The notes below the pieces were generated by a model that saw nothing but the letters and a program-made list of their open reading frames with translations, had not been told where the DNA came from and did no database searches. A DNA stretch of 64,000 nt, taken from the sequence record NC_070650.1; one strand, given 5' to 3'. A program made the position numbers and the translations under genes. How positions within the stretch are numbered: position 1 is the stretch's first letter; each line of letters opens with the position of its first letter. Positions 19,757 through 58,504 of the stretch are shown here, piece by piece.

Positions 19757-19795
19757 TCAACATATTGGGAGGGCTTTCGCCCTCCCTTTTATGCC
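19755..19795. terminator. Bidirectional terminator; copy of dispersed hairpin element
   Basis: AATCAACATATT-GGGAGGGC-TTTC-GCCCTCCC-TTTTATGCC. Confidence 0.85.
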
Positions 19796-23926: not shown

Positions 23927-24325
23927 ATGTCGAATACACTGGTCCCAGAAAGTTTGAGCCGGTACTTTATTAAGGCGACCCCCGCATCGTGGGGGGCTTT
24001 GCCCCTTAATCAAACGTACTATTTTGTATCATCCAGTTTAGATGCCTATTTGACCGAGTTGGAGTTGATGGCCACTGAGCCAGATAACCACCCAACAACG
24101 CATGCGTCCATGGTGGTATTAAAAGATTGGATCGGTAATGTGACTCTCACTGAATTACAAAACCGTCTTGCTACACTGGAAACTAACTACGCCGAACTTC
24201 AGGTCACTCGCCCTGAAGCGGCCATCCGTCAAACGGTCGCAACCAGTATGCGACTAGCTGACCTGCAAAACCTTGGAGTGCGCCTTTATGGAAGCGGAAC
24301 TGAACTGGGACTGTATTTGTCCTAA
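23927..24325 (+). CDS. Hypothetical protein
   Basis: 132-aa ORF in tight operon after uvsX. Confidence 0.6.
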   Translation: MSNTLVPESLSRYFIKATPASWGALPLNQTYYFVSSSLDAYLTELELMATEPDNHPTTHASMVVLKDWIGNVTLTELQNRLATLETNYAELQVTRPEAAIRQTVATSMRLADLQNLGVRLYGSGTELGLYLS

Positions 24326-27670: not shown

Positions 27671-28194
27671 CTCAGAATAAAAAATCTTCTGATGCAGAAA
27701 TACAAAATGTGTTAAATACCGTTAATAGCGGATTTGAAACCAGCGGTAAACAAGTCGGCGTATTGGCTGGATTATTCCGCCAACTATGTAACGTCATGTC
27801 GGTCAGGGCTTTTGCCTGGGCATCTTTGATGGAAATGTACCTGAGCAACCCCGCTAACGGTATCCCTCAAAACTCCAAAGACCGGGCTACTGCTCGAGGT
27901 AATCTCACCAAAGAACTTTTGCGGGAACACATGAGCTGGAAGGTGTTTCTAAAAGCGGTAAGATTTTTGGGTGCCATACGAGCTGAGTTTACTATTAAAA
28001 TCTGGGTTACGCCAACCAAAGTTCATGAAGCTACGGTAACCATTGTGGAACGCATGCCGCGAGAACGAATTAAGCAGCATGAGGAAGCTCAACGTAACAT
28101 TGAAGAAAATCATTCTGGGCTGAATGTTCCATTATTCGATGATAACCAGCGTAGAGTATTAAGGCGCAAACAGCGTAATAATCAAACAGAATGA
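27667..28194 (+). CDS. Conserved hypothetical protein (early)
   Basis: ATGA overlap; GVLAGLFR..ARGNLTKEL..MSWKVFLKAVRFL motif recalled as conserved in phiKZ-like phages. Confidence 0.65.
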   Translation: MTQNKKSSDAEIQNVLNTVNSGFETSGKQVGVLAGLFRQLCNVMSVRAFAWASLMEMYLSNPANGIPQNSKDRATARGNLTKELLREHMSWKVFLKAVRFLGAIRAEFTIKIWVTPTKVHEATVTIVERMPRERIKQHEEAQRNIEENHSGLNVPLFDDNQRRVLRRKQRNNQTE

Positions 28195-28257: not shown

Positions 28258-29352
28258 ATGGCGCAAAAAATAGCTTCCAGCGTATTCGCCGGCGCACCAA
28301 CAGATAACTTGAATGTTGCTGATATCTATCTCACCCCGACCGTAGATTTGTTAACCAGTTTAGCAAGCACTTTGAGTAGTGTGTTGGATAGCGTTTTTAA
28401 TTCCATCCGTACGGCGGGATTAGATTTATCGGAACTTGCCGAGCTATTGAAGTCGCTGATACCCACATCAAGTAGCTCATCCGGATCTTCATCTAGCTCG
28501 TCTCTGGCGTCTTCGACCACCACCACTACTGAAGCGGTGTCTCGTTTAAGTTCAGCCCTCGGGATTAATGTGTCGGCAATTAGCGATCTGCCGGACGAGG
28601 TTAAAAATCAAGCGGTCGCCAACCTTATTTCATTATCGGGAATCAATGTATCTACTTTAGGTACAATCACTGGCGATAGAATCAATGTTACTCCCGGGAC
28701 CAGTGCTCAGAATGCTAATGGCGTGATTAATGGGATTAATGCTGTTCTGGGAGACACCACTACTTCTGTACCCACCGTTGTCGATGGTGTGGCTCTACAG
28801 GCGTTTTTATTATCCCTTTACAACTATGCCGTTGATTACGGGTTATCCGATGCAGCCGGCACTGCGGCTTCAGCACTGAATCAATCTGCCGTGGATACCG
28901 ATACAGCATCGGATATTGTCACTGCGATGGTATCCAAGTTTCCAACTGCTGTAGGAAACAGCGATCTTGATACCATGCAAACCATTTTAAATAACACCAC
29001 CCCCGGTGCGGTAGTTGCAAAATACCCGAGTGCTGTAAACGACATTATCTCAACATACACCTTAGACTCAACTATCCCGGTTAGTGATTATCCGACGGTA
29101 TTGACTAAAATGACCGACGTATTGGGAACCATTGATTCTACCTGGGCTACGGATACTCGAGATGGCGTAACGGTAAATTCACTATCCCCATTCGATGGTT
29201 TATCTGACGGTGCCGCGGCATTATTCGCCACATCAGAAGAGCATCAGGCCACCGCATTGTTAGCACAAACTTATTCTTCGGCTAATACCGTGGAACTACT
29301 GCGAGATTTTTATCCAAACATCGCATTACTGAGTTCAACAGTACGCGCATAA
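28258..29352 (+). CDS. Virion structural protein, Ser/Thr-rich
   Basis: GAGG RBS before ATG 28258 (track 28201 runs through a hairpin); SVFAGAPTD..ADIY motif; poly-Ser/Thr linker. Confidence 0.6.
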   Translation: MAQKIASSVFAGAPTDNLNVADIYLTPTVDLLTSLASTLSSVLDSVFNSIRTAGLDLSELAELLKSLIPTSSSSSGSSSSSSLASSTTTTTEAVSRLSSALGINVSAISDLPDEVKNQAVANLISLSGINVSTLGTITGDRINVTPGTSAQNANGVINGINAVLGDTTTSVPTVVDGVALQAFLLSLYNYAVDYGLSDAAGTAASALNQSAVDTDTASDIVTAMVSKFPTAVGNSDLDTMQTILNNTTPGAVVAKYPSAVNDIISTYTLDSTIPVSDYPTVLTKMTDVLGTIDSTWATDTRDGVTVNSLSPFDGLSDGAAALFATSEEHQATALLAQTYSSANTVELLRDFYPNIALLSSTVRA

Positions 29353-29385
29353 AAGGGAGGGCGAAAGCCCTCCCAATATGTTGTT
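29347..29385. terminator. Bidirectional terminator; copy of dispersed hairpin element (reverse orientation)
   Basis: GCATAAAA-GGGAGGGC-GAAA-GCCCTCCC-AATATGTTGTT; both flanking genes' stop codons touch the element. Confidence 0.85.
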
Positions 29386-48055: not shown

Positions 48056-48095
48056 GTCAACATATCGGGAGGGCGAAAGCCCTCCCTTTTATGTC
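48056..48095 (+). terminator. Terminator; copy of dispersed hairpin element
   Basis: GTCAACATATC-GGGAGGGC-GAAA-GCCCTCCC-TTTTATGTC. Confidence 0.85.
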
Positions 48096-48103
48096 GTGAG
48101 ACT

Positions 48104-48126
48104 AAAAAAATATAAGCGTATATTAC
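48104..48126 (+). promoter_or_regulatory. Early promoter (A-tract + CG-TATATTAC)
   Basis: AAAAAAA-TATAAGCG-TATATTAC upstream of ATG 48177. Confidence 0.75.
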
Positions 48127-49736: not shown

Positions 49737-50408
49737 ATGGTTAATGTCATTCTTTGTGAAATAGACCACGTATGGACCTCCAGAGATATTCGCGCAGCCA
49801 TACGTGATTGCGTTAAGCAGGAATATCGGGAAGTAGTGCGCACCCCACTAAAGGCAATGACGGCTGGCGAGTTATTTGCCCTACTGGAGAAACCTTACGA
49901 CTCCCCGCTGTCTGTGGTTAAATATGGATATCGTTCACACAAGAACCATGTCTATAAACTGTATTCCTCGTTTTTCTTACGAGACCCTACGGCCACCCAT
50001 GACTGCACGTTAAGCCGTAACCCTACAACCATAACGGTGACTCAGGATACCTACACTGCCGACGCAGCCTTATTGCTATTTGTTATTGCAGATAGGCTGA
50101 TTAAAGTAAGTGGTTTGTATGCTGATGAAAGTAAGGAGATTTTTTACTTACGTTCACTAAGACATATGTTGGCATGCGCTATTAACAACTACCTTGGATT
50201 TCTAACGAAGCTGCATGTGGAGAAGACCCGCGTAATGGGGGTTGAATCCATCGGTGGGATTCCTACGGTGTTTGTTATTGGTCATTCCCCAACAGATGCG
50301 GTAAGGTCTATAGTAGCCGCCATATTCCCCAATGATGAAATCACTTATTTCACCCATCTGCCGGGACTGCGTGGACTGCGTTACCTTCCCGTGAAACAAA
50401 AAAGTTAA
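49737..50408 (+). CDS. Hypothetical protein
   Basis: 223-aa ORF in same operon. Confidence 0.6.
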   Translation: MVNVILCEIDHVWTSRDIRAAIRDCVKQEYREVVRTPLKAMTAGELFALLEKPYDSPLSVVKYGYRSHKNHVYKLYSSFFLRDPTATHDCTLSRNPTTITVTQDTYTADAALLLFVIADRLIKVSGLYADESKEIFYLRSLRHMLACAINNYLGFLTKLHVEKTRVMGVESIGGIPTVFVIGHSPTDAVRSIVAAIFPNDEITYFTHLPGLRGLRYLPVKQKS

Positions 50409-50421
50409 ACACGTATATTAC
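50398..50421 (+). promoter_or_regulatory. Early promoter (A-tract + CG-TATATTAC)
   Basis: AAAAAA-GTTAAACACG-TATATTAC (core 50414-50421). Confidence 0.75.
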
Positions 50422-50522
50422 TAACTGGCATGTAGGGTAGTAAAATAATACCCACCGCATACGTAATGTGCGGAAACACCAATTTACTTGTTCATGATAT
50501 CAACCCACCTGGAGATTTAACA

Positions 50523-50972
50523 ATGGCTAAACTTGCCTACGACCTGGACCAATCTGCCGCCGACTTCCAGAAAAAACTGACCGTCGGTGACAATGGTTCC
50601 ATCAAAGCCGAAGATGGCGCTATCGAATCACTGCTACCCGAAGGCAAAACGATGGCCGACCTGGTTGAAGCACAAAACATCATCAGTAAAATCGTGACCG
50701 TCGGCAGCCTGGCTGCTGGCCGCGCATCGATCGAAGCATTCAAAGGCAACAAAGAGCTGGCCGAAACCGAATTCAAAGTGAAGGTCGGTCACGATACTCT
50801 GAAAATCAACGTAGCGCGTGAAGGCGAAACTTCAGATGGCAAAGGCGGCCGCAAGAAAGTCTACGGTCAAGAACGCATCGCATACCTGGTATCCGGCGGC
50901 CCGAGCGTAGGGACCCTGAAAAAGGTACGTGAAACGATCAAATCTGAAGCGGCTTCGGCGCTGGCTGATTAA
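50523..50972 (+). CDS. Conserved, probably highly expressed early protein
   Basis: GGAGA RBS before ATG 50523 (track 50466); strong CTG/GGC/ATC/AAA codon bias; own promoter and terminator. Confidence 0.75.
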   Translation: MAKLAYDLDQSAADFQKKLTVGDNGSIKAEDGAIESLLPEGKTMADLVEAQNIISKIVTVGSLAAGRASIEAFKGNKELAETEFKVKVGHDTLKINVAREGETSDGKGGRKKVYGQERIAYLVSGGPSVGTLKKVRETIKSEAASALAD

Positions 50973-50995
50973 TTCAGCGGCCTGGCGAAATACCG

Positions 50996-51042
50996 GCATG
51001 GGGTCTTCGGGCCCCATGCATGGCTGACTGGTTTCTTTTTTT
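50996..51042 (+). terminator. cUUCGg hairpin with downstream U-tract
   Basis: GCATGGGGTC-TTCG-GGCCCCATGC then GTTTCTTTTTTT. Confidence 0.7.
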
Positions 51043-51066
51043 ATTTAACGACAATGGAATTCAATC

Positions 51067-51786
51067 ATGAGTGCAGATGAACAAAATGTAACCGTATCTG
51101 GTACTGATGTGAACGTTGATACTGCAGGCCGACTTGAGGTATCCGGCGACCACCTTGAGGTGGCGTCCCAAGGCGTGGATGTCGGCATCGCTCCGCAAAG
51201 TGATGACAAGTCACTGACCATCGATGTAGACCCCTTCGATACCGACCCGGTTGGGACAGTGAATGCAATCACTGACGCTTTCCGTGCTGTGAACTCTGAC
51301 GCAGGGGTGGACGCGAGCGCAAATGCGACCAATGATGCCACCGCCGACCCCACATCCGGGGAAGACGGTTTGACCGACGAAGACAAAGAAATGGTCTCTC
51401 TCGAACTGACCCCGCTGGACTTCATGATCCGCATGCTCGGCATCGACCTGGCTATGGCGCAGATTTATCCTGAGCCGATCTACCTGGCCACGGATGCGGA
51501 TGCTTCCGACCTCCTGGCCCGCGAAGGACTGCAATACAGTTTCGACGCCAACCGAAGCCTATATCTGTGCGGCATGGCCGATTCTTCTATTGAAGCCACA
51601 CTCAAAGACCCCGATCTGCGGGTACTGGCACTGCGCGCCATCAAATTCAAATACCGCCGCTTTGACCAGCCGGTTGATGATGCAGTAAAAGCAGTTACTG
51701 CGGCATTACGTAAACAACAACACGATATCGCCGCCGCTCAGGCTGCCGAAGCAGCAGCTCATAATTCCGTGGCCGGTCCACAATAA
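51067..51786 (+). CDS. Acidic hypothetical protein
   Basis: Asp/Val/Thr-rich N-terminal ~125 aa, globular C-terminal half; GC-rich codon usage. Confidence 0.65.
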   Translation: MSADEQNVTVSGTDVNVDTAGRLEVSGDHLEVASQGVDVGIAPQSDDKSLTIDVDPFDTDPVGTVNAITDAFRAVNSDAGVDASANATNDATADPTSGEDGLTDEDKEMVSLELTPLDFMIRMLGIDLAMAQIYPEPIYLATDADASDLLAREGLQYSFDANRSLYLCGMADSSIEATLKDPDLRVLALRAIKFKYRRFDQPVDDAVKAVTAALRKQQHDIAAAQAAEAAAHNSVAGPQ

Positions 51787-51789
51787 TCG

Positions 51790-51817
51790 AGTGGAGGGCG
51801 TTGTCCCTCCACTTATG
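51790..51817 (+). terminator. Hairpin terminator
   Basis: AGTGGAGGG-CGTTGT-CCCTCCACT-TATG. Confidence 0.6.
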
Positions 51818-51836
51818 TCATTTAGGGGATAATCTC

Positions 51837-52265
51837 ATGATTTTGTATACTGCACAAATATCGCAATATCGTGGGTTAAAGGAAGCAAACATCCCGTACA
51901 TAGATACCACCATTAAGTCGGGAGATAAATATCTCGCCCCTTCTTGGGAAATGGTTTCTAGACATAAAGCAGGAACCTTGACGGACCAAGGATACATGGA
52001 TTTGTATTTACCGATGATGCGTGCAAGTTATAAACGTCACGATTCTCATTGGCGAAAAATAGCCTTGATGGACAAAGTAGCACTACTCTGTTACTGCCCC
52101 CATGGCGTACACGGCCCTGACGAGAAACCAAATTTTTGCCATCGTTTTTCGCTAGTTGGAATATTTGAACGCATCTGCAAACATAACGGTATTCCATTCA
52201 CATATGCAGGTGAGTGGGTACGTGGTGAAACGATAATGGTGAGGTTGCCGAATTGGTTAACCTAG
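51837..52265 (+). CDS. DUF488/YeaO-like protein
   Basis: MILYT start, LAPSWEMV, ALLCYC and FCHR motifs typical of DUF488 family (recalled); start ATG 51837 (track 51801 inside hairpin). Confidence 0.65.
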   Translation: MILYTAQISQYRGLKEANIPYIDTTIKSGDKYLAPSWEMVSRHKAGTLTDQGYMDLYLPMMRASYKRHDSHWRKIALMDKVALLCYCPHGVHGPDEKPNFCHRFSLVGIFERICKHNGIPFTYAGEWVRGETIMVRLPNWLT

Positions 52266-52281
52266 AAAGAGGTATGTAGGA

Positions 52282-52659
52282 ATGGATGAGCTTTTAACGG
52301 CGCTGGCTGGATTAACTGGAAATGATCCTACCACAGTTCTTGCCACTCCAGGTTGGGCTCTGCGAGATGACCTGCGCAACATTCATGCGCTGGCAGTAAA
52401 GCACTGCACCCAAATTGATGTGGATAAAGTGATAGTACCCCCACAGGCTTTTCAGTTGCTGCGTAAAAATGGATACGATATTAGGATAGCACGAGAAGCA
52501 AACATTGTCATGTCGGCAACTCTGTACACGTCTGCTGGAGTATTTGTGCTGTATCAAAACACAAATATACTTCATAATTTCGTAAATATCCACAACCCCC
52601 AGACAACCATGAAAAAACCATCATGGGTACGGCGGTGGCTTGGTGGGATTACCGCATAA
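52282..52659 (+). CDS. Hypothetical protein with C-terminal amphipathic tail
   Basis: 125 aa; ends KKPSWVRRWLGGITA. Confidence 0.6.
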   Translation: MDELLTALAGLTGNDPTTVLATPGWALRDDLRNIHALAVKHCTQIDVDKVIVPPQAFQLLRKNGYDIRIAREANIVMSATLYTSAGVFVLYQNTNILHNFVNIHNPQTTMKKPSWVRRWLGGITA

Positions 52660-52693
52660 AAGGGAGGGCGAAAGCCCTCCCCAATATGTTGTT
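52654..52693. terminator. Terminator; copy of dispersed hairpin element (reverse orientation)
   Basis: GCATAAAA-GGGAGGGC-GAAA-GCCCTCCC-C-AATATGTTGTT; differs from 29347-29385 by one inserted C. Confidence 0.85.
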
Positions 52694-52720
52694 TCTTTTA
52701 TTTTTGTAAAAACGTGAAAC

Positions 52721-52744
52721 AAAAAAATTATAAACGTATATAAC
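52721..52744 (+). promoter_or_regulatory. Early promoter variant (A-tract + CG-TATATAAC)
   Basis: AAAAAAA-TTATAAACG-TATATAAC; same architecture as 48104 and 50398 promoters with one core mismatch. Confidence 0.65.
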
Positions 52745-52812
52745 TTTCGGGACTAGGTGAGTAGATAATCTTCTACGACTATTAATTCAATCAACAATCT
52801 GGAGTATAGCTC

Positions 52813-53007
52813 ATGTTTAATTCAATCAAAACTTTCGTTAAAAACAACAAAACTGCAATTGCTGTCGTAGGTGCCGTTGCCGTGGTGGGTGGCGTAGGCG
52901 CAGCAGTTTATTTCCAAAAGCTCCACACGGGTAAAGTGTTGGAACAAGTTGGTGATGTGGTAGACGGTGCCACTGAAGCTGCGGCTGAAGCAGTAAAAGA
53001 AGCGTAA
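52813..53007 (+). CDS. Small single-pass membrane protein (basic N-term, Gly-rich TM, acidic tail)
   Basis: GGAG RBS; TM AIAVVGAVAVVGGVGAAVYF. Confidence 0.75.
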   Translation: MFNSIKTFVKNNKTAIAVVGAVAVVGGVGAAVYFQKLHTGKVLEQVGDVVDGATEAAAEAVKEA

Positions 53008-53040
53008 CATAAAACGGGGGGTGGTAATACCATCCCCCTT
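53008..53040 (+). terminator. Hairpin between microprotein genes
   Basis: CATAAAAC-GGGGGGTGGT-AAT-ACCATCCCCC-TT. Confidence 0.5.
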
Positions 53041-53084
53041 CTGAGATACCCGGTTATCATTACCCTCTTTCTTAGGATAGTATC

Positions 53085-53300
53085 ATGAACAAATTCATTC
53101 GCGTGGTTGCTGCGGGGGTTGCTGGGCACGTTGTAGGTAGCCTTACCGGTGCTGGGGTAGCTATTGGGGTTGATGCCATAGCATCACAAACCACGAACAA
53201 TCCGGATAAACGTACCACCGCGGCTATGGTCGGGGGTACATTAACATACTGGATTGCCGGAGTAAAGACGGCAATCCATGTTTATAAGCATTTTGAATAA
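53085..53300 (+). CDS. Small glycine-zipper membrane protein
   Basis: AGGA RBS; GxxGxxxGxxxG helix then second hydrophobic helix. Confidence 0.7.
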   Translation: MNKFIRVVAAGVAGHVVGSLTGAGVAIGVDAIASQTTNNPDKRTTAAMVGGTLTYWIAGVKTAIHVYKHFE

Positions 53301-53332
53301 TTTAATAAATTGAAGATACGAGGGTAAAGACC

Positions 53333-53539
53333 ATGGGTATTAAGAAAATAATTGTGGGCGGCATTGTAGGCGGTATTGCCGGAGGAGAAGCCGGAAAATA
53401 CGTTCATAAAACCGCCATCGAGTTGGGCTGCAGCGAACGTAAAGCGGCGTGGGCTGGTATTCTTACCTCGGTAGTGGTAGGTACGATTACGGGCGATGTC
53501 GTGCGCAATAAACTTTTAAAGAACTGGGATAACCAGTAA
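53333..53539 (+). CDS. Small glycine-zipper membrane protein
   Basis: GGIVGGIAGGEAG zipper and AAWAGILTSVVVGTITG helix. Confidence 0.7.
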   Translation: MGIKKIIVGGIVGGIAGGEAGKYVHKTAIELGCSERKAAWAGILTSVVVGTITGDVVRNKLLKNWDNQ

Positions 53540-53572
53540 TTTTTTAAACCATCAAAAAGTGAGGAAAACCTT

Positions 53573-53827
53573 ATGGAAGTATTAGTATTCGCATTAATTC
53601 TCGATATCATCATCGGCGTAGTTTCCTACACCTGGAAAGGACGCAACGGTTTTGCCTTTTTCCTCTGGGCCTTTTTGCTGAGTCCGGTAATCGGATTCAT
53701 CATTCTGCTCTGCGTGAAAAACCTCAAAGCCGAAGCCGAAAAAGAACGGCTTCGCAAAGAAGAAAAAGAAGCCGCGGATCGTCGGCATCTGGAAACCCTG
53801 GCGATTCTATCCAATCGTCGGGACTAA
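53573..53827 (+). CDS. Small two-TM membrane protein with charged C-terminal helix
   Basis: GAGGA RBS; VLVFALILDIIIGVVSY / KGRNG / FAFFLWAFLLSPVIGFIILLCV. Confidence 0.75.
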   Translation: MEVLVFALILDIIIGVVSYTWKGRNGFAFFLWAFLLSPVIGFIILLCVKNLKAEAEKERLRKEEKEAADRRHLETLAILSNRRD

Positions 53828-53838
53828 CGCCACGCTAA

Positions 53839-53870
53839 AAAAGCCCTCTTAGAGAGAGGGCTTTTATGCC
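53839..53870. terminator. Bidirectional-type hairpin
   Basis: AAAAGCCCTCT-TAGAG-AGAGGGCTTTT-ATGCC. Confidence 0.7.
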
Positions 53871-53893
53871 CTTAATCTAAGAGAGAACCCATC

Positions 53894-54319
53894 ATGAAAA
53901 CTATTTTCAATTACATCAAAAACCACAAAATCATTTCAACCATCGCCGCAGTATTGTTGGGTGTGAGTGGTTATTTGTACGCTTCAGGCAGCGATAATAA
54001 TCAGGCCGCTATGCCGCCGGCGCCATTCCAAATCATGGCTTATTCTCAGCGTGATTTATTAAACCAGCCGTATGTGCGTTTACAGGTCACCAGTACTGCC
54101 GACGTCATCACGATTAATAACATCACTGTTAACCGCGGTAATTGCCTTTTCGAAAACCATACCCTGCCTGGGTACAATTCACCCCCAGCATTACCGACAA
54201 CCATGCGGTATGGTCAGAACAACCGCTTTGTCTTTTTCCGCTGCGATAAAGCATTAGAAGCGACCATCAGTACCAACGTCGGTACTTGGACCGTACAGTT
54301 TAACTATCCGTCACAATAA
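53894..54319 (+). CDS. Exported/membrane-anchored beta-rich protein with two Cys
   Basis: N-terminal signal/anchor; NRGNC...LPTTMRYGQ...RC...TNVGTWTVQF. Confidence 0.75.
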   Translation: MKTIFNYIKNHKIISTIAAVLLGVSGYLYASGSDNNQAAMPPAPFQIMAYSQRDLLNQPYVRLQVTSTADVITINNITVNRGNCLFENHTLPGYNSPPALPTTMRYGQNNRFVFFRCDKALEATISTNVGTWTVQFNYPSQ

Positions 54320-54330
54320 GGAACGACTCC

Positions 54331-54663
54331 ATGAGAACTATTATCATTTTTATGTTGGTGACTTTTGCATTGTTGCCCTATGTGAAGGCCACCGCAGAAC
54401 CGGGTAATATGACAATTACCCCTCGCGTTGTTTCTGACGGCCCCCGACCCATTGTTGATTACGAGATTCAGTCTTACGTCGATGGGTTGGTGGTCCAGGA
54501 TTTTTTGATGACTATTGATGGTGACTGTTGGATTCCAGCTCAGCTCCCACTCAAGCTCAATCAGGGAAGTATCGGCAAAGTACGCATTATCGGCTGCCCA
54601 ATCCAACCACTGCACGTCATTACTAATTTGGGTAGTTACGACTTCTATTTTAACAAACTGTAG
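54331..54663 (+). CDS. Exported beta-rich protein, paralogue of 53894..54319
   Basis: Signal peptide MRTIIIFMLVTFALLPYVKA; DGDC...LPLKLNQG...GC...TNLGSYDFYF. Confidence 0.7.
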   Translation: MRTIIIFMLVTFALLPYVKATAEPGNMTITPRVVSDGPRPIVDYEIQSYVDGLVVQDFLMTIDGDCWIPAQLPLKLNQGSIGKVRIIGCPIQPLHVITNLGSYDFYFNKL

Positions 54664-54689
54664 TATAGCGTCCATTCGAGGAGTGAACC

Positions 54690-54917
54690 ATGTTAATTTT
54701 TATACAAGCATATGTAAATAGTTTTTCTGTAGTACCTCCTCGACATATGGAACCCGTACCTACTGTCGAAGTTAAAATAGATGGTCATGTGGTTTATGAA
54801 TCGCATGACCTGAATGACATCATCGAGCAAGTATACGTAGAACCAAAACCAAAAACCAAATCTGGTTTCGATTTCTTTGCACAAACCACGGCACGAGCCA
54901 AACAACGTAGGGGGTAA
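54690..54917 (+). CDS. Small hypothetical protein
   Basis: GAGGAG RBS; 75 aa. Confidence 0.65.
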   Translation: MLIFIQAYVNSFSVVPPRHMEPVPTVEVKIDGHVVYESHDLNDIIEQVYVEPKPKTKSGFDFFAQTTARAKQRRG

Positions 54918-54922
54918 CAGCT

Positions 54923-55084
54923 ATGAACACATCACGTGACTGGATTTCTTTTGATACATTTGGCAAAGTTGTTGCTCTCTATTACGGCATTAAAGTCGGG
55001 CGTTTCTGCTGGCGAGTAATGAAAGAGAACATGGACTTGCGCGATGAGCTAGAAGCTCAGAAACAAAAAACCGCAACAAAATAA
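54923..55084 (+). CDS. Small 53-aa protein missing from ORF track
   Basis: AGGGGG upstream; MNTSRDWISFDTFGKVVALYYGIKVGRFCWRVMKENMDLRDELEAQKQKTATK fills the gap between neighbours. Confidence 0.6.
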   Translation: MNTSRDWISFDTFGKVVALYYGIKVGRFCWRVMKENMDLRDELEAQKQKTATK

Positions 55085-55117
55085 ATTAACCCAACATTCA
55101 ATTAAAAAGGTACTATC

Positions 55118-55321
55118 ATGTTTACTAAACTGCAAACCGTTCTGTCTACCGTATCCAACAAACAACTGATTGCTGCCGGCATCGGTGCCGCGGCATTTGG
55201 TGGCTTTGGTCTGGGGTATATTTCTGGCCGGATTCACGGCCGTAAAAAAGCGGCGGTGGTCGCCGTTGACGAAGCAGTAGTGGAGGCAGAAACTCCCGAT
55301 GCTGAAACTGTTAAAGAGTAA
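55118..55321 (+). CDS. Small single-pass membrane protein, same architecture as 52813..53007
   Basis: AAGG RBS; TM LIAAGIGAAAFGGFGLGYI; acidic tail. Confidence 0.75.
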   Translation: MFTKLQTVLSTVSNKQLIAAGIGAAAFGGFGLGYISGRIHGRKKAAVVAVDEAVVEAETPDAETVKE

Positions 55322-55436
55322 AGAGCTGGTGTGGTTCTTGGCTGGGGTTGCTGTCGGAGGGTGGGCGGTTGTAATAACTTACGATATCGCCAACAAACGA
55401 ACCAAACCCCCAGCTGAGGAAGAACCCGCAGAGTAA
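55299..55436 (+). CDS. Small 45-aa single-pass membrane protein missing from ORF track
   Basis: MLKLLKSKELVWFLAGVAVGGWAVVITYDIANKRTKPPAEEEPAE; GGAGG upstream; ends right before a palindromic terminator. Confidence 0.6.
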   Translation: MLKLLKSKELVWFLAGVAVGGWAVVITYDIANKRTKPPAEEEPAE

Positions 55437-55438
55437 TT

Positions 55439-55490
55439 GAGCTAGAGGCGTACGCCTCTAGCTCTTCTCATTTCGTTTATTTTTTTTATT
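55439..55490 (+). terminator. Terminator, loopless palindrome
   Basis: Perfect 26-bp palindrome GAGCTAGAGGCGTACGCCTCTAGCTC (55439-55464) followed by T-rich tract. Confidence 0.7.
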
Positions 55491-55492
55491 TC

Positions 55493-55519
55493 GGCATAAA
55501 AGGGAGGCCGAAGCCTCCC
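55493..55519 (-). terminator. Terminator of tube/sheath operon; variant of dispersed element
   Basis: On minus strand GGGAGGC-TTCG-GCCTCCC-TTTTATGCC. Confidence 0.8.
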
Positions 55520-55527
55520 CTTAGGGT

Positions 55528-56394
55528 TTAGATTGAAGTGCTCGGCATGTTTGCAACAGATTCCGCATAACCGGAAGTGATGGCCGATACGTCCGCTGCA
55601 ATAGAGCTGATGAAAGCTTCTTGCAGATTCGGGTTGGTACCTTCCATGTTCATGCTGTTCAGTACTTTCTGTGCCATGGACATGACACCGAAACCATGCT
55701 GAGTAACCGCGGTGAATCGAACCTGGATTTCCTGGTTCTGACCGGCAGCGGTCAGGTCACGACGACCAACAACATCACCGGTACCTTCAGGGAACATGTT
55801 GGTACACAGCCACGCTTCGTTTACGGTGGTAAACGTCGGGTCGGCTTCGAAGAACAGCATAGTCGCGCCAGTTACGTCGCCCAGCATGTCCGTAGGTTTG
55901 CTGGAAGCATTCAGTGCAACGACGTTCGGGATTTTAGTAATCGGGTCCATACCCAGACCAGTAATCCAAGCTTCCAGGAACCAACGAATTGGTTTGCCCG
56001 GTTTTTCAAGCCAGGTAAAGGTCGGGGTTGACCGATCGCGAGTGGTGTTGCTGATATCTTCCTGAATCTGCCCGGAACCATCGATTTGGTTTTCAACAAA
56101 TTCAGCTTTAACGCCGGCCTGCAGCCCTTCAATCTGACGGGCGTGCATTTCTACCAGAACTTTTAAAGCTCCGATATATTTAGACGAGTCTGGGAAGTAA
56201 GAGAAACCTCGCGGCGCCTGCACCAGGATACATACGACGTTACGACTCACATAAGTCGTATTTGCAAACATGTTTGCAAAGATCGTATGGTGACCCATTT
56301 GACCTTCTACTTGGAGGTCAATGGCCGGTGCCTGGGTATTCGTCGTGTAGGCTGTGTTATTCAAAAATACATCTTTCGTACGTGGGATAGCCAT
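55528..56394 (-). CDS. Tail tube protein (phiKZ gp30-like)
   Basis: 288 aa directly downstream of sheath; ATMLFFEADP, AWLCTNMFP, GRRDLT motifs. Confidence 0.85.
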   Translation of the reverse strand: MAIPRTKDVFLNNTAYTTNTQAPAIDLQVEGQMGHHTIFANMFANTTYVSRNVVCILVQAPRGFSYFPDSSKYIGALKVLVEMHARQIEGLQAGVKAEFVENQIDGSGQIQEDISNTTRDRSTPTFTWLEKPGKPIRWFLEAWITGLGMDPITKIPNVVALNASSKPTDMLGDVTGATMLFFEADPTFTTVNEAWLCTNMFPEGTGDVVGRRDLTAAGQNQEIQVRFTAVTQHGFGVMSMAQKVLNSMNMEGTNPNLQEAFISSIAADVSAITSGYAESVANMPSTSI

Positions 56395-56443
56395 TGTTTA
56401 TCTCCTGGATTGGGGGTAGTTGCCCACCCCCAACGGAAGGTCA

Positions 56444-58504
56444 TTAGGAAGTCGTTTGCAGGTCTTCCAGACGGCGGGTAATCAGTGTGTAAGTACCCAC
56501 AGTTTTCATGACGTTGGCGTAGATGTAAATATAGCACGACCAGCTATATCCGCGCGCAACATCATTGGTGTCAAAGAACGTTTCCGGGACAATGGTCACG
56601 CGATTATCGAAACGACCTTTAACGGCATCAGAGATCAATGCGTTAGATTGTTCGATGAACTGCGCCTGAGTCAGGTCACTGCGACCAGTCAACTGCTTCC
56701 AGGTCTGTTCAACGATTTTTTCGCAGTACGCAACAATACAGGTGACCAGGAAACTATTCAGCACCGAAGTATCGTCGTCGTATACGGTTTGGATTGCCGG
56801 ATAGAACAGCTGACGTTGGTCAAACTGTTGAACCCAAGTCAAACCCAGTGCCCAGTTAGACTGACGCACTTTTGTAGCTTTGTAGGTCAGGTTCACATCA
56901 CGGACTTTTGTTACCACGTTGTTCGGGTAGATATCAAAAGCCTTCCCAGGAGTCAGTACAGCGGTCTGAGCCCCCATATACGCCGCTACTTTATCCGCAA
57001 GGTCGATGGTCATCGGCACAAGAGGCGCAGCATTGTCGTCAATCAAAGTACCACCGTGGCCAATGATGGCCGCACGGCAAGTTTTGGTGTTGTAGTACTC
57101 GGATTCAGGGAACTGCAGTGCTGCAGTACGCAGCGCCGTTGCGATGGAAGTTTCTGCGTTGTTGTTGTTCAGAGTGGTGTTTACGTCCTGAGTAGACAGA
57201 ACGGTAACAATATCTTTACGCAGAGACATCGGCAGCAGCAGCGTTTTCTTCGTGGCGATATCAAACCCGGTATCCCAAATATGGGTAATCGGATATTTAG
57301 CCATATCCATCAGATGGTAATCTGAGGTTTCGAAGTTATTCATGACATCCGTGACCAGCGCTGCATATGCGGCGTCATCCATGGTGCCATCATCACCACC
57401 TACGGAGTAATGCGTGGTAGACGAGTTAAGGGTGTCCGCACCATCAAGTGCACCCTGCACAAGAATAGTTTCGTACGGGTTACCATTAACATCCAGGCCG
57501 TCAAAGAAGTTGATCAGGTATTCATCGCCGTCCACCATTGTTGCGCCAGTATATGCGCATTCAGCGGCATAAAGCTGTTGCAGAATGTTAGCAACATTGC
57601 TGTGGTAAACATTGATGGTTTCTACCGGACCGTAGATCGGAGTGTTCGAGGTGGAGCTATCGACATCACGATACTTTTTGAGTACCAGATTGTCGACATA
57701 CAGGTTTTGTTCAATTTTGGTATTGATGGCGCCTTTCTTGAAACTGAATTCGACGTAGGCGTCGCCATCGATGGTTTGGGTTACTGTCGCAGTAGAAGTC
57801 GCTGAACTGCGTTCAACGTACTGAATGCGATAAAGTGCGGTACCCTGCTCTTCAACGATATCGCTATCGACAGGCTCACTGGATTTTGCTGTAGCGCACC
57901 ACAGACGGCGGCCGATGTTATTACCGTACGACCCAAAATCAGAAACCTGGTCTTCGAAGATAGGATAACGCATTGAGGTAGTGCTACCGGATACCAGGGT
58001 ACCCGTGGTCGTGGTGCCACCACCAATGCCGTTAGTTGCTTCGCCTGCTACCCATTTCAGGATATGCCCGGCGACGGTTTCCCCAGTCGGGATTGGATTA
58101 CCGGAACTGTCGGTAATGTATGCGCCATCAGCATCACGTTCATAGAGCGGGACCTGGGCCGCAACGATTTCGAGAGATAAACGACATGTAGCCGGATCGG
58201 CCGCGTCTGTAGGTTTCAGGCGCAGAATAAACTGCGGGTTAGACTGGGTTACCAGTACATTCGATAGAACCGTACCATGGTTAGCCCACTTGCTCAGAAG
58301 ATTGAAACTGTCAGAACCATACAGGTTGATTCGATCAGTGCTACTCGCCACCTGCGTAGGTACTGTCGGACCACGCTGAGTGAACAGGGGCACCAACGCC
58401 ATATGGATTGGGGTAAAATTAATCCCCACGCTAGTGGAACGGGCACTTTGGTCCAATACCCCTAGCTTGATGGCCATTGGAGCGGCATTAACGATGGTAG
58501 CCAT
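56444..58504 (-). CDS. Tail sheath protein (phiKZ gp29-like)
   Basis: 686 aa; IVNAAPM start, LYGSDSF, WDTGFD..TKK, ESEYYNT.TCRA, LFYPAIQTVYDDDTSVL, GYSW motifs. Confidence 0.9.
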   Translation of the reverse strand: MATIVNAAPMAIKLGVLDQSARSTSVGINFTPIHMALVPLFTQRGPTVPTQVASSTDRINLYGSDSFNLLSKWANHGTVLSNVLVTQSNPQFILRLKPTDAADPATCRLSLEIVAAQVPLYERDADGAYITDSSGNPIPTGETVAGHILKWVAGEATNGIGGGTTTTGTLVSGSTTSMRYPIFEDQVSDFGSYGNNIGRRLWCATAKSSEPVDSDIVEEQGTALYRIQYVERSSATSTATVTQTIDGDAYVEFSFKKGAINTKIEQNLYVDNLVLKKYRDVDSSTSNTPIYGPVETINVYHSNVANILQQLYAAECAYTGATMVDGDEYLINFFDGLDVNGNPYETILVQGALDGADTLNSSTTHYSVGGDDGTMDDAAYAALVTDVMNNFETSDYHLMDMAKYPITHIWDTGFDIATKKTLLLPMSLRKDIVTVLSTQDVNTTLNNNNAETSIATALRTAALQFPESEYYNTKTCRAAIIGHGGTLIDDNAAPLVPMTIDLADKVAAYMGAQTAVLTPGKAFDIYPNNVVTKVRDVNLTYKATKVRQSNWALGLTWVQQFDQRQLFYPAIQTVYDDDTSVLNSFLVTCIVAYCEKIVEQTWKQLTGRSDLTQAQFIEQSNALISDAVKGRFDNRVTIVPETFFDTNDVARGYSWSCYIYIYANVMKTVGTYTLITRRLEDLQTTS

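Follow-up and report, generated by a model that had tools for sequence, protein, structure and literature searches.

The stretch of DNA analysed here (the window, 64,000 nucleotides (nt)) is identical, at 100%, to positions 124001-188000 of the record of Klebsiella phage vB_KvM-Eowyn (NC_070650.1), and carries ten small plus-strand genes in a row at 52813-55436. These genes, here named o1 to o10 and together called the cassette, encode products of 45-141 amino acids (aa) and stand behind a promoter of the early type; the predictions support envelope targeting for most of the products. The cassette is accessory and fast-evolving, lying in a variable slot before the tail-tube gene, and stands outside the core machinery of phages that form a nucleus. 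It most likely serves competition or defence at the cell envelope, a reading to which we give about an even chance; we prefer envelope conflict as its purpose because purifying selection combined with rapid turnover is the pattern expected of conflict genes. Positions below are those of the window unless given as record positions.

The genome of Eowyn measures 265,389 bp and belongs to the genus Eowynvirus. Among jumbo phages, Eowyn falls with the phiKZ-like, nucleus-forming ones, since it encodes the PhuZ tubulin, the nuclear-shell protein and split multisubunit RNA polymerases, and since homologues of its tail-tube protein occur in phages of the phiKZ type, for example Goslar, PCH45, 201phi2-1 and PhiPA3. 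An earlier note on this stretch had assumed just such a background, rightly on the evidence of PhuZ, the shell protein and the tail-tube homologues.

Ten small genes under purifying selection

RefSeq annotates o1 to o9 as gp198 to gp206, all of them hypothetical proteins, and lacks o10 (55299-55436, 45 aa), which overlaps o9 by 23 nt. The ten consecutive open reading frames (ORFs) of 45-141 aa that the earlier note had listed are all present, and all ten are real genes under purifying selection, a conclusion on which four lines of evidence agree. A purine-rich, Shine-Dalgarno-like stretch lies 5′ of each gene. Codon-usage scores are positive for all ten, o10 included; the caller was trained on the long genes of the phage, and was used in place of choosing ORFs by length, which had lost o1 and o6 to antisense ORFs. 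The ratio of non-synonymous to synonymous substitution rates (dN/dS), from comparison of Eowyn with its relatives KpHz_2 and KpGz_1, is 0.04-0.3 wherever divergence suffices, again including o10 (dN/dS = 0.08; 10 non-synonymous vs 19 synonymous changes). Finally, on five contigs from metagenomic relatives, the gene callers used by others arrive at these ten genes too, identically ordered and nearly unchanged in length. No paralogues of the ten were found elsewhere in the genome, and an Rfam scan of 50000-57000 gave no matches.

Promoter and transcription unit

The promoter (52711-52756, plus strand) has a core 8-mer, TATATAAC, at 52737-52744, below an AT-rich upstream stretch. The core is one base off the phiKZ early-promoter 8-mer, TATATTAC-like, as described for that phage (PMC7058600). 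AT-rich motifs mark the early promoters of the virion RNA polymerase in every jumbo phage profiled (PMC7598289; PMC11512511). When such 8-mers were listed genome-wide, about twenty shared the AT-rich upstream region and a downstream pattern, and all of these were on the plus strand, intergenic and 35-140 nt 5′ of a gene. A weight matrix was built from 19 sites, leaving out that of the cassette, and both strands of all 265 kb were scanned with it: 23 sites score at least 30, one scores 20, and no other exceeds 12. All 24 sites are intergenic, on the plus strand and upstream of plus-strand genes, and the cassette site has the top score among them, though absent from the training set. Sites of this class also precede gp088, the gene for the nuclear-shell protein, and gp100, which encodes an RNA-polymerase subunit. 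By its motif and by its genome-wide company the promoter is thus classed from sequence as early-type, as had been proposed, and we infer that the cassette is expressed early.

The promoter is nearly invariant in KpHz_2 and KpGz_1. Together with the 5′ leader (52757-52812, plus strand), which is conserved within the genus, it is better conserved than the adjoining coding sequences. A conserved stem-loop in the leader was considered and dropped, RNAalifold having predicted no pairs in a consensus structure. Promoters of the sigma-70 type were no commoner in the region than in shuffled sequence. Elsewhere in the genome, three nearly identical 46-nt copies of an early-type promoter, at record positions 27718, 34400 and 101423 (loci L011 and L013), look like a repeated promoter cassette; another early-type site lies directly 5′ of gp240, annotated as a transposase (record 219660-220806, locus L014).

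The evidence supports a single transcription unit bounded by terminators. Upstream, a GC-rich hairpin follows the gp197 stop codon (52655-52688; -24.3 kcal/mol, z = -4.9). Downstream, the intrinsic terminator of the cassette (55439-55487, plus strand) has a perfect 11-bp stem and a T-rich run (-21.7 kcal/mol, z = -6.2). The two internal hairpins that the earlier note had placed at 53008 and 53839 are real, lying at 53016-53038 after o1 (plus strand; -19.2 kcal/mol, z = -3.2) and at 53839-53865 after o4 (-18.3 kcal/mol, z = -4.4). All seven genus-level relatives have both, with stems that differ in sequence. The o4 hairpin lies between an upstream A-run and a downstream U-run, and is terminator-like in both directions. 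The o1 hairpin is followed by no U-run in any genome compared, and may for that reason be an attenuator or a stabiliser of the 3′ end rather than a classic terminator.

The hairpin after gp197 is one of five copies in the window of a GC-rich terminator hairpin element of about 30 nt, with a 13-nt exact core at 19781-19793 (minus), 29348-29360 (plus), 48081-48093 (minus), 52655-52667 (plus) and 55495-55507 (plus); about 1.7 chance matches are expected at up to two mismatches. The copies lie at operon ends, in both orientations. The last of them, oriented as the one at 52655 is, forms the terminator hairpin of the tail-tube gene (55495-55520, minus strand). These two copies bracket the cassette in like orientation and have in common a 25-nt stretch at 88% identity; they could be the trace of its insertion.

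Predicted membrane and export features

Hydropathy was scored on the Kyte-Doolittle scale in windows of 19 residues, with 1.5 as the threshold. Eight of the ten products have hydrophobic or signal segments by this measure, in line with an earlier count of at least eight with transmembrane (TM) or signal segments. The two below threshold are o7 (gp204, 54690-54917, 75 aa; score 0.73), which has no TM segment and a basic C-terminus, and o8 (gp205, 54923-55084, 53 aa; 0.85), weakly hydrophobic and the most conserved member. The cassette is the densest run of hydrophobic-segment genes in the genome, and a permutation test of this clustering gave P = 0.014 at threshold 1.5 and P = 0.11 at threshold 1.6.

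Several kinds of product can be told apart. The three basic-TM-acidic microproteins that had been described earlier can be recognised as o1 (gp198, 52813-53007, 64 aa), o9 (gp206, 55118-55321, 67 aa) and o10, each predicted to cross the membrane once, from a net-positive N-terminus to an acidic tail; o1 and o9 are paralogues (31% identity, expect value (E) = 8e-5). Repeated GxxxG motifs occur in o2 (gp199, 53085-53300, 71 aa), the most variable member, and especially in o3 (gp200, 53333-53539, 68 aa), both predicted helical hairpins, and o9 has such repeats too. The proposal of two glycine-zipper hairpins therefore stands as far as the repeats in o2 and o3 go, but not by the Pfam glycine-zipper models PF13488 and PF05433, with which o3 scores 12.9 and 12.1 bits, under the cut-offs of 25 and 24.2 (E = 0.11 and 0.19). 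The predicted two-TM protein corresponds to o4 (gp201, 53573-53827, 84 aa), in which two strong hydrophobic segments are joined to a highly charged C-terminal tail. The two longest products, o5 (gp202, 53894-54319, 141 aa) and o6 (gp203, 54331-54663, 110 aa), have an N-terminal signal or anchor and a signal peptide, respectively. Each has exactly two cysteines; neither has one in its N-terminal segment that could make a lipoprotein signal.

Scans of all ten proteins against Pfam, PHROGs, NCBIfam and PADLOC gave no named family; in particular, none of the ten matched the anti-phage defence profiles of PADLOC at E up to 1.

An unnamed exported domain with two cysteines

Among the PHROGs, o5 matches phrog_36014 at E = 3e-9. 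An exhaustive HMMER search collected 113 cluster representatives of its family at E < 1e-3, built on a domain of about 95 aa; most members are of about 110-125 aa with signal peptides, and many are of the lipoprotein type. Conservation reaches at least 90% in columns N80, R81, G82, C84, G107, C117 and T127, and G130 never varies. The AlphaFold2 model of o5 is an eight-strand beta sandwich with predicted local distance difference test (pLDDT) values above 90 over residues 41-140. No Pfam model exists for the family, and its profile found no sequence match among solved structures. Searched by fold, the model finds generic immunoglobulin (Ig)-like sandwiches in the PDB (best E = 0.016), none of them specific in the top 50, and uncharacterised phage homologues only in the top 50 from a viral library.

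The earlier note had called o5 and o6 exported two-cysteine paralogues, and profile comparison agrees: o6 is related to the o5 domain as a distant paralogue (hhalign probability 97%, E = 1e-10, both cysteines aligned), and scores 21 bits with the family hidden Markov model. Word-indexed protein searches with o4, o5 and o6 found genus-level relatives only.

Among jumbo phages, o5 homologues occur in pEa_SNUABM_54, RisingSun and CF8, at unrelated genomic positions. Outside jumbo phages, four genomic contexts were informative and three more lay on contigs too short to be so; of the four, one adjoins recombination genes and a repressor of the prophage type, and another an integrase. On these sequence comparisons, o5 and o6 are assigned to an unnamed, widespread family of predicted exported proteins common to jumbo phages, prophages and bacteria. 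Some of the bacterial relatives have a tandem double domain, C-terminal in proteins of 220 and 437 aa (L043 5001-6314; L039 5001-5663).

Variation among relatives

Within the genus, gene order in the cassette is fixed and the alleles are mosaic. Identity to Eowyn per gene runs from 38% (o2) to 100% (o9 and o10 in KpGz_1), and KpHz_2 has neither o2 nor o3; the tail tube is 100% identical at the protein level across the three isolates. The slot itself lies upstream of the 3′ end of the tail-tube gene, which converges on the cassette. L016 and L017, both from metagenomes, are more distant: their tail tubes match that of Eowyn at 71% and 67% identity. They present the same hairpin-plus-promoter layout in the slot, followed by 11-12 tiny ORFs, nearly all with hydrophobic segments; profile searches tie only the o1-type and o2-type families to these ORFs. 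Further away, the slot holds a single gene in Goslar, none in L024 and L030, and unrelated genes in LucasX and pEa_SNUABM_54.

Six members were searched across the phage collection, and o5 alone has distant homologues in other jumbo phages; tblastn searches of 50,697 phage records with o1, o2, o4, o6 and o7 gave nothing significant beyond the genus. Thus o4, for one, is not conserved outside it.

Comparison with known systems

The Imm and Sp (spackle) proteins of phage T4 are small, non-essential, immediate-early proteins of superinfection exclusion; one, of about 83 aa, spans the inner membrane twice, and the other is small, exported and periplasmic. With its 84 aa, two hydrophobic segments and early-type promoter, o4 resembles the two-TM protein in size and layout, a resemblance and nothing further, and o5 and o6 share a predicted periplasmic location with the exported one. 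However, no Pfam or PHROG match to those families was obtained at E up to 1, the cassette has ten genes in a nucleus-forming jumbo phage, and o5 and o6 are beta-rich. The Llp protein of T5 and the Cor proteins of phi80 and HK022 are receptor-blocking lipoproteins, likewise small and exported, that alter the envelope of the phage's own host, and many o5 relatives are of the lipoprotein type, some of them beside prophage-type repressor or integrase genes; o5 and o6 themselves differ in having no lipoprotein cysteine, and show no sequence match or specific fold match to these proteins.

The early operons of phiKZ and 201phi2-1 have a similar AT-rich promoter, with a core 8-mer that is the same or one base off, and likewise consist of short hypothetical genes with hairpin terminators at the end. 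Their gene content is unrelated to that of the Eowyn cassette, whose promoter is classed with theirs by its sequence motif. Class II holins and pinholins share with o4 the two TM segments and charged C-terminal tail, but o4 has no family match and no lysin or spanin neighbour, and lies behind an early-type promoter. Glycine-zipper peptides (PF13488 and PF05433, and the ionophoric toxins of contact-dependent growth inhibition) share with o2 and o3 the repeated GxxxG in a helical hairpin; o2 and o3 differ in being free-standing proteins of 68-71 aa rather than toxin domains, with scores under the Pfam cut-offs.

Possible functions of the cassette

Superinfection exclusion, or interference with envelope-located defence, is a plausible role for the cassette. 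In such a scheme the virion RNA polymerase would transcribe the unit in the first minutes of infection, and the host Sec/YidC routes would carry the products to the inner membrane or periplasm. Each protein would act on its own envelope target and not as part of a single machine, with o5 and o6 perhaps serving as periplasmic binding modules and the micro-membrane proteins acting on components of the inner membrane. What they would have in common is a purpose, conflict at the envelope when the cell has just been infected, by excluding rival phages or by blunting host responses located there. The turnover among relatives marks the cassette as accessory and fast-evolving, in keeping with a conflict role. 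The same turnover tells against the one dedicated "system" of the earlier note, since gene content changes between relatives and a viable isolate lacks o2 and o3.

Several points weigh against envelope conflict. The clustering of hydrophobic-segment genes is real, but only moderately significant on a crude hydropathy measure; hydropathy is also the sole basis for the membrane topologies, and o7 and o8 give no clear membrane signal. No protein of the ten matches an exclusion, immunity, holin, spanin, defence or anti-defence family. Timing is deduced from the promoter motif, and the motif may not mean "early only", because it also precedes the operon of the transglycosylase gene gp134 and the gene after that for the major head protein. 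That all ten products take part in a common process is conjecture.

Two alternatives seem to us unlikely. According to the first, the junction of converging operons tolerates insertions and simply gathers short hydrophobic ORFs, the kind most easily gained, which would have no common function. A slot holding none to about twelve genes among relatives is as expected from this, as are the presence of o5-family genes elsewhere in other jumbo phages and the like-oriented copies of one terminator hairpin that bracket the cassette. A permissive slot fits poorly with purifying selection on every gene, and with what persists in relatives whose tail tubes are only 67-71% identical: the promoter, the membrane-protein character, and the o1-type and o2-type families.

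The second, to our minds also improbable, is host shut-off: the glycine-zipper hairpins and micro-TM proteins would disturb membrane potential or transport, and so halt host physiology rather than exclude rivals. The early-type promoter would suit this, and the repeated GxxxG of o2, o3 and o9 recalls the glycine-zipper helices found in ionophoric toxins (PMC11630599). Yet o2 and o3 are dispensable in KpHz_2, the Pfam models for the motif stay under their cut-offs, and shut-off leaves two periplasmic Ig-like proteins unexplained.

A module for the timing of lysis appears quite unlikely. In this case o4 would be a holin or pinholin, with the other small membrane proteins as antiholins or regulators, serving a membrane-anchored transglycosylase. 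The tail of o4 is charged as in class II holins, and the gp134 transglycosylase begins with a strongly hydrophobic segment, with no obvious holin next to its gene. There is also a weak match of o9 to an Rz-like spanin family (E = 0.026), and its overlap with o10 would suit an Rz/Rz1-like pair, but o10 has no cysteine and hence no lipoprotein cysteine. Nor does any member have a significant holin or spanin match. Further, the cassette follows the strongest early-type promoter of the genome, gp134 is the nearest lysin-like gene and lies 74 kb away, o4 does not extend beyond the genus, and ten genes far exceed the needs of a lysis cassette. Separately, gp134 (record 103643-104437, locus L013) is maybe a signal-anchored lysin, with two early-type sites 2 kb upstream.

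That the cassette serves to build or anchor the early infection vesicle, the role that the earlier note had listed first, or the phage nucleus is very improbable despite the early-type promoter, the predicted membrane targeting and the encoded PhuZ and nuclear-shell protein. The cassette is not conserved among chimalliviruses, being absent from Goslar, LucasX, pEa_SNUABM_54 and most other chimallivirus loci examined; five of the six members searched have no significant match beyond the genus, o5 having its distant homologues in other jumbo phages; and o2 and o3 are dispensable. Formation of the vesicle is, moreover, reported to draw on injected proteins and host lipid, and to go ahead even with translation arrested (bioRxiv 10.1101/2024.03.24.586471).

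Genomic setting

The cassette is the last of three early-type units in succession, since sites of the same class occur at 48119 (promoter 48105-48126), driving gp191 to gp193, and at 50414 (promoter 50391-50421), driving gp194 to gp197. The 4.6 kb that these two units occupy 5′ of the cassette hold non-structural hypothetical genes, with no structural annotation on any of them. The three units together are flanked by the prohead-protease operon and by the converging tail-tube and sheath genes. The earlier placement of the cassette between core head and tail modules is therefore right on the tail side and wrong on the head side, where the adjoining gp191 to gp197 are not head-module DNA.

Among these neighbours, gp191 has weak matches to AraC-type helix-turn-helix models, under the Pfam cut-offs. 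Chimalliviruses conserve gp194 and gp196, in Goslar as gp214 and gp215. A further group of small predicted membrane proteins, gp039 to gp056, is clustered less tightly at record 22.9-32 kb (locus L011), behind early-type sites at record positions 24078 and 27718.

Implications

Early small membrane proteins are the least understood part of jumbo-phage genomes. With the best early promoter of its genome, a fixed position, and turnover under purifying selection, the cassette is therefore a well-defined place in which to study how nucleus-forming phages deal with the envelope. It also brings out an unnamed exported domain family, common to prophages and bacteria, that has neither a Pfam model nor a solved structure. 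A bolder proposal, speculative and in our estimate unlikely to hold as a whole, is that the cassette would be an "envelope conflict" locus of Eowyn-like chimalliviruses, locked in position and quick to turn over, and that the o5/o6 domain would define a new, widespread family of periplasmic binding proteins of phages and prophages that block receptors or entry; if true, it would add a new class of exclusion factor, found alike in mobile elements, prophages and jumbo phages. Where near-identical Klebsiella therapy phages differ, part of the explanation might lie in the variable alleles of this locus.

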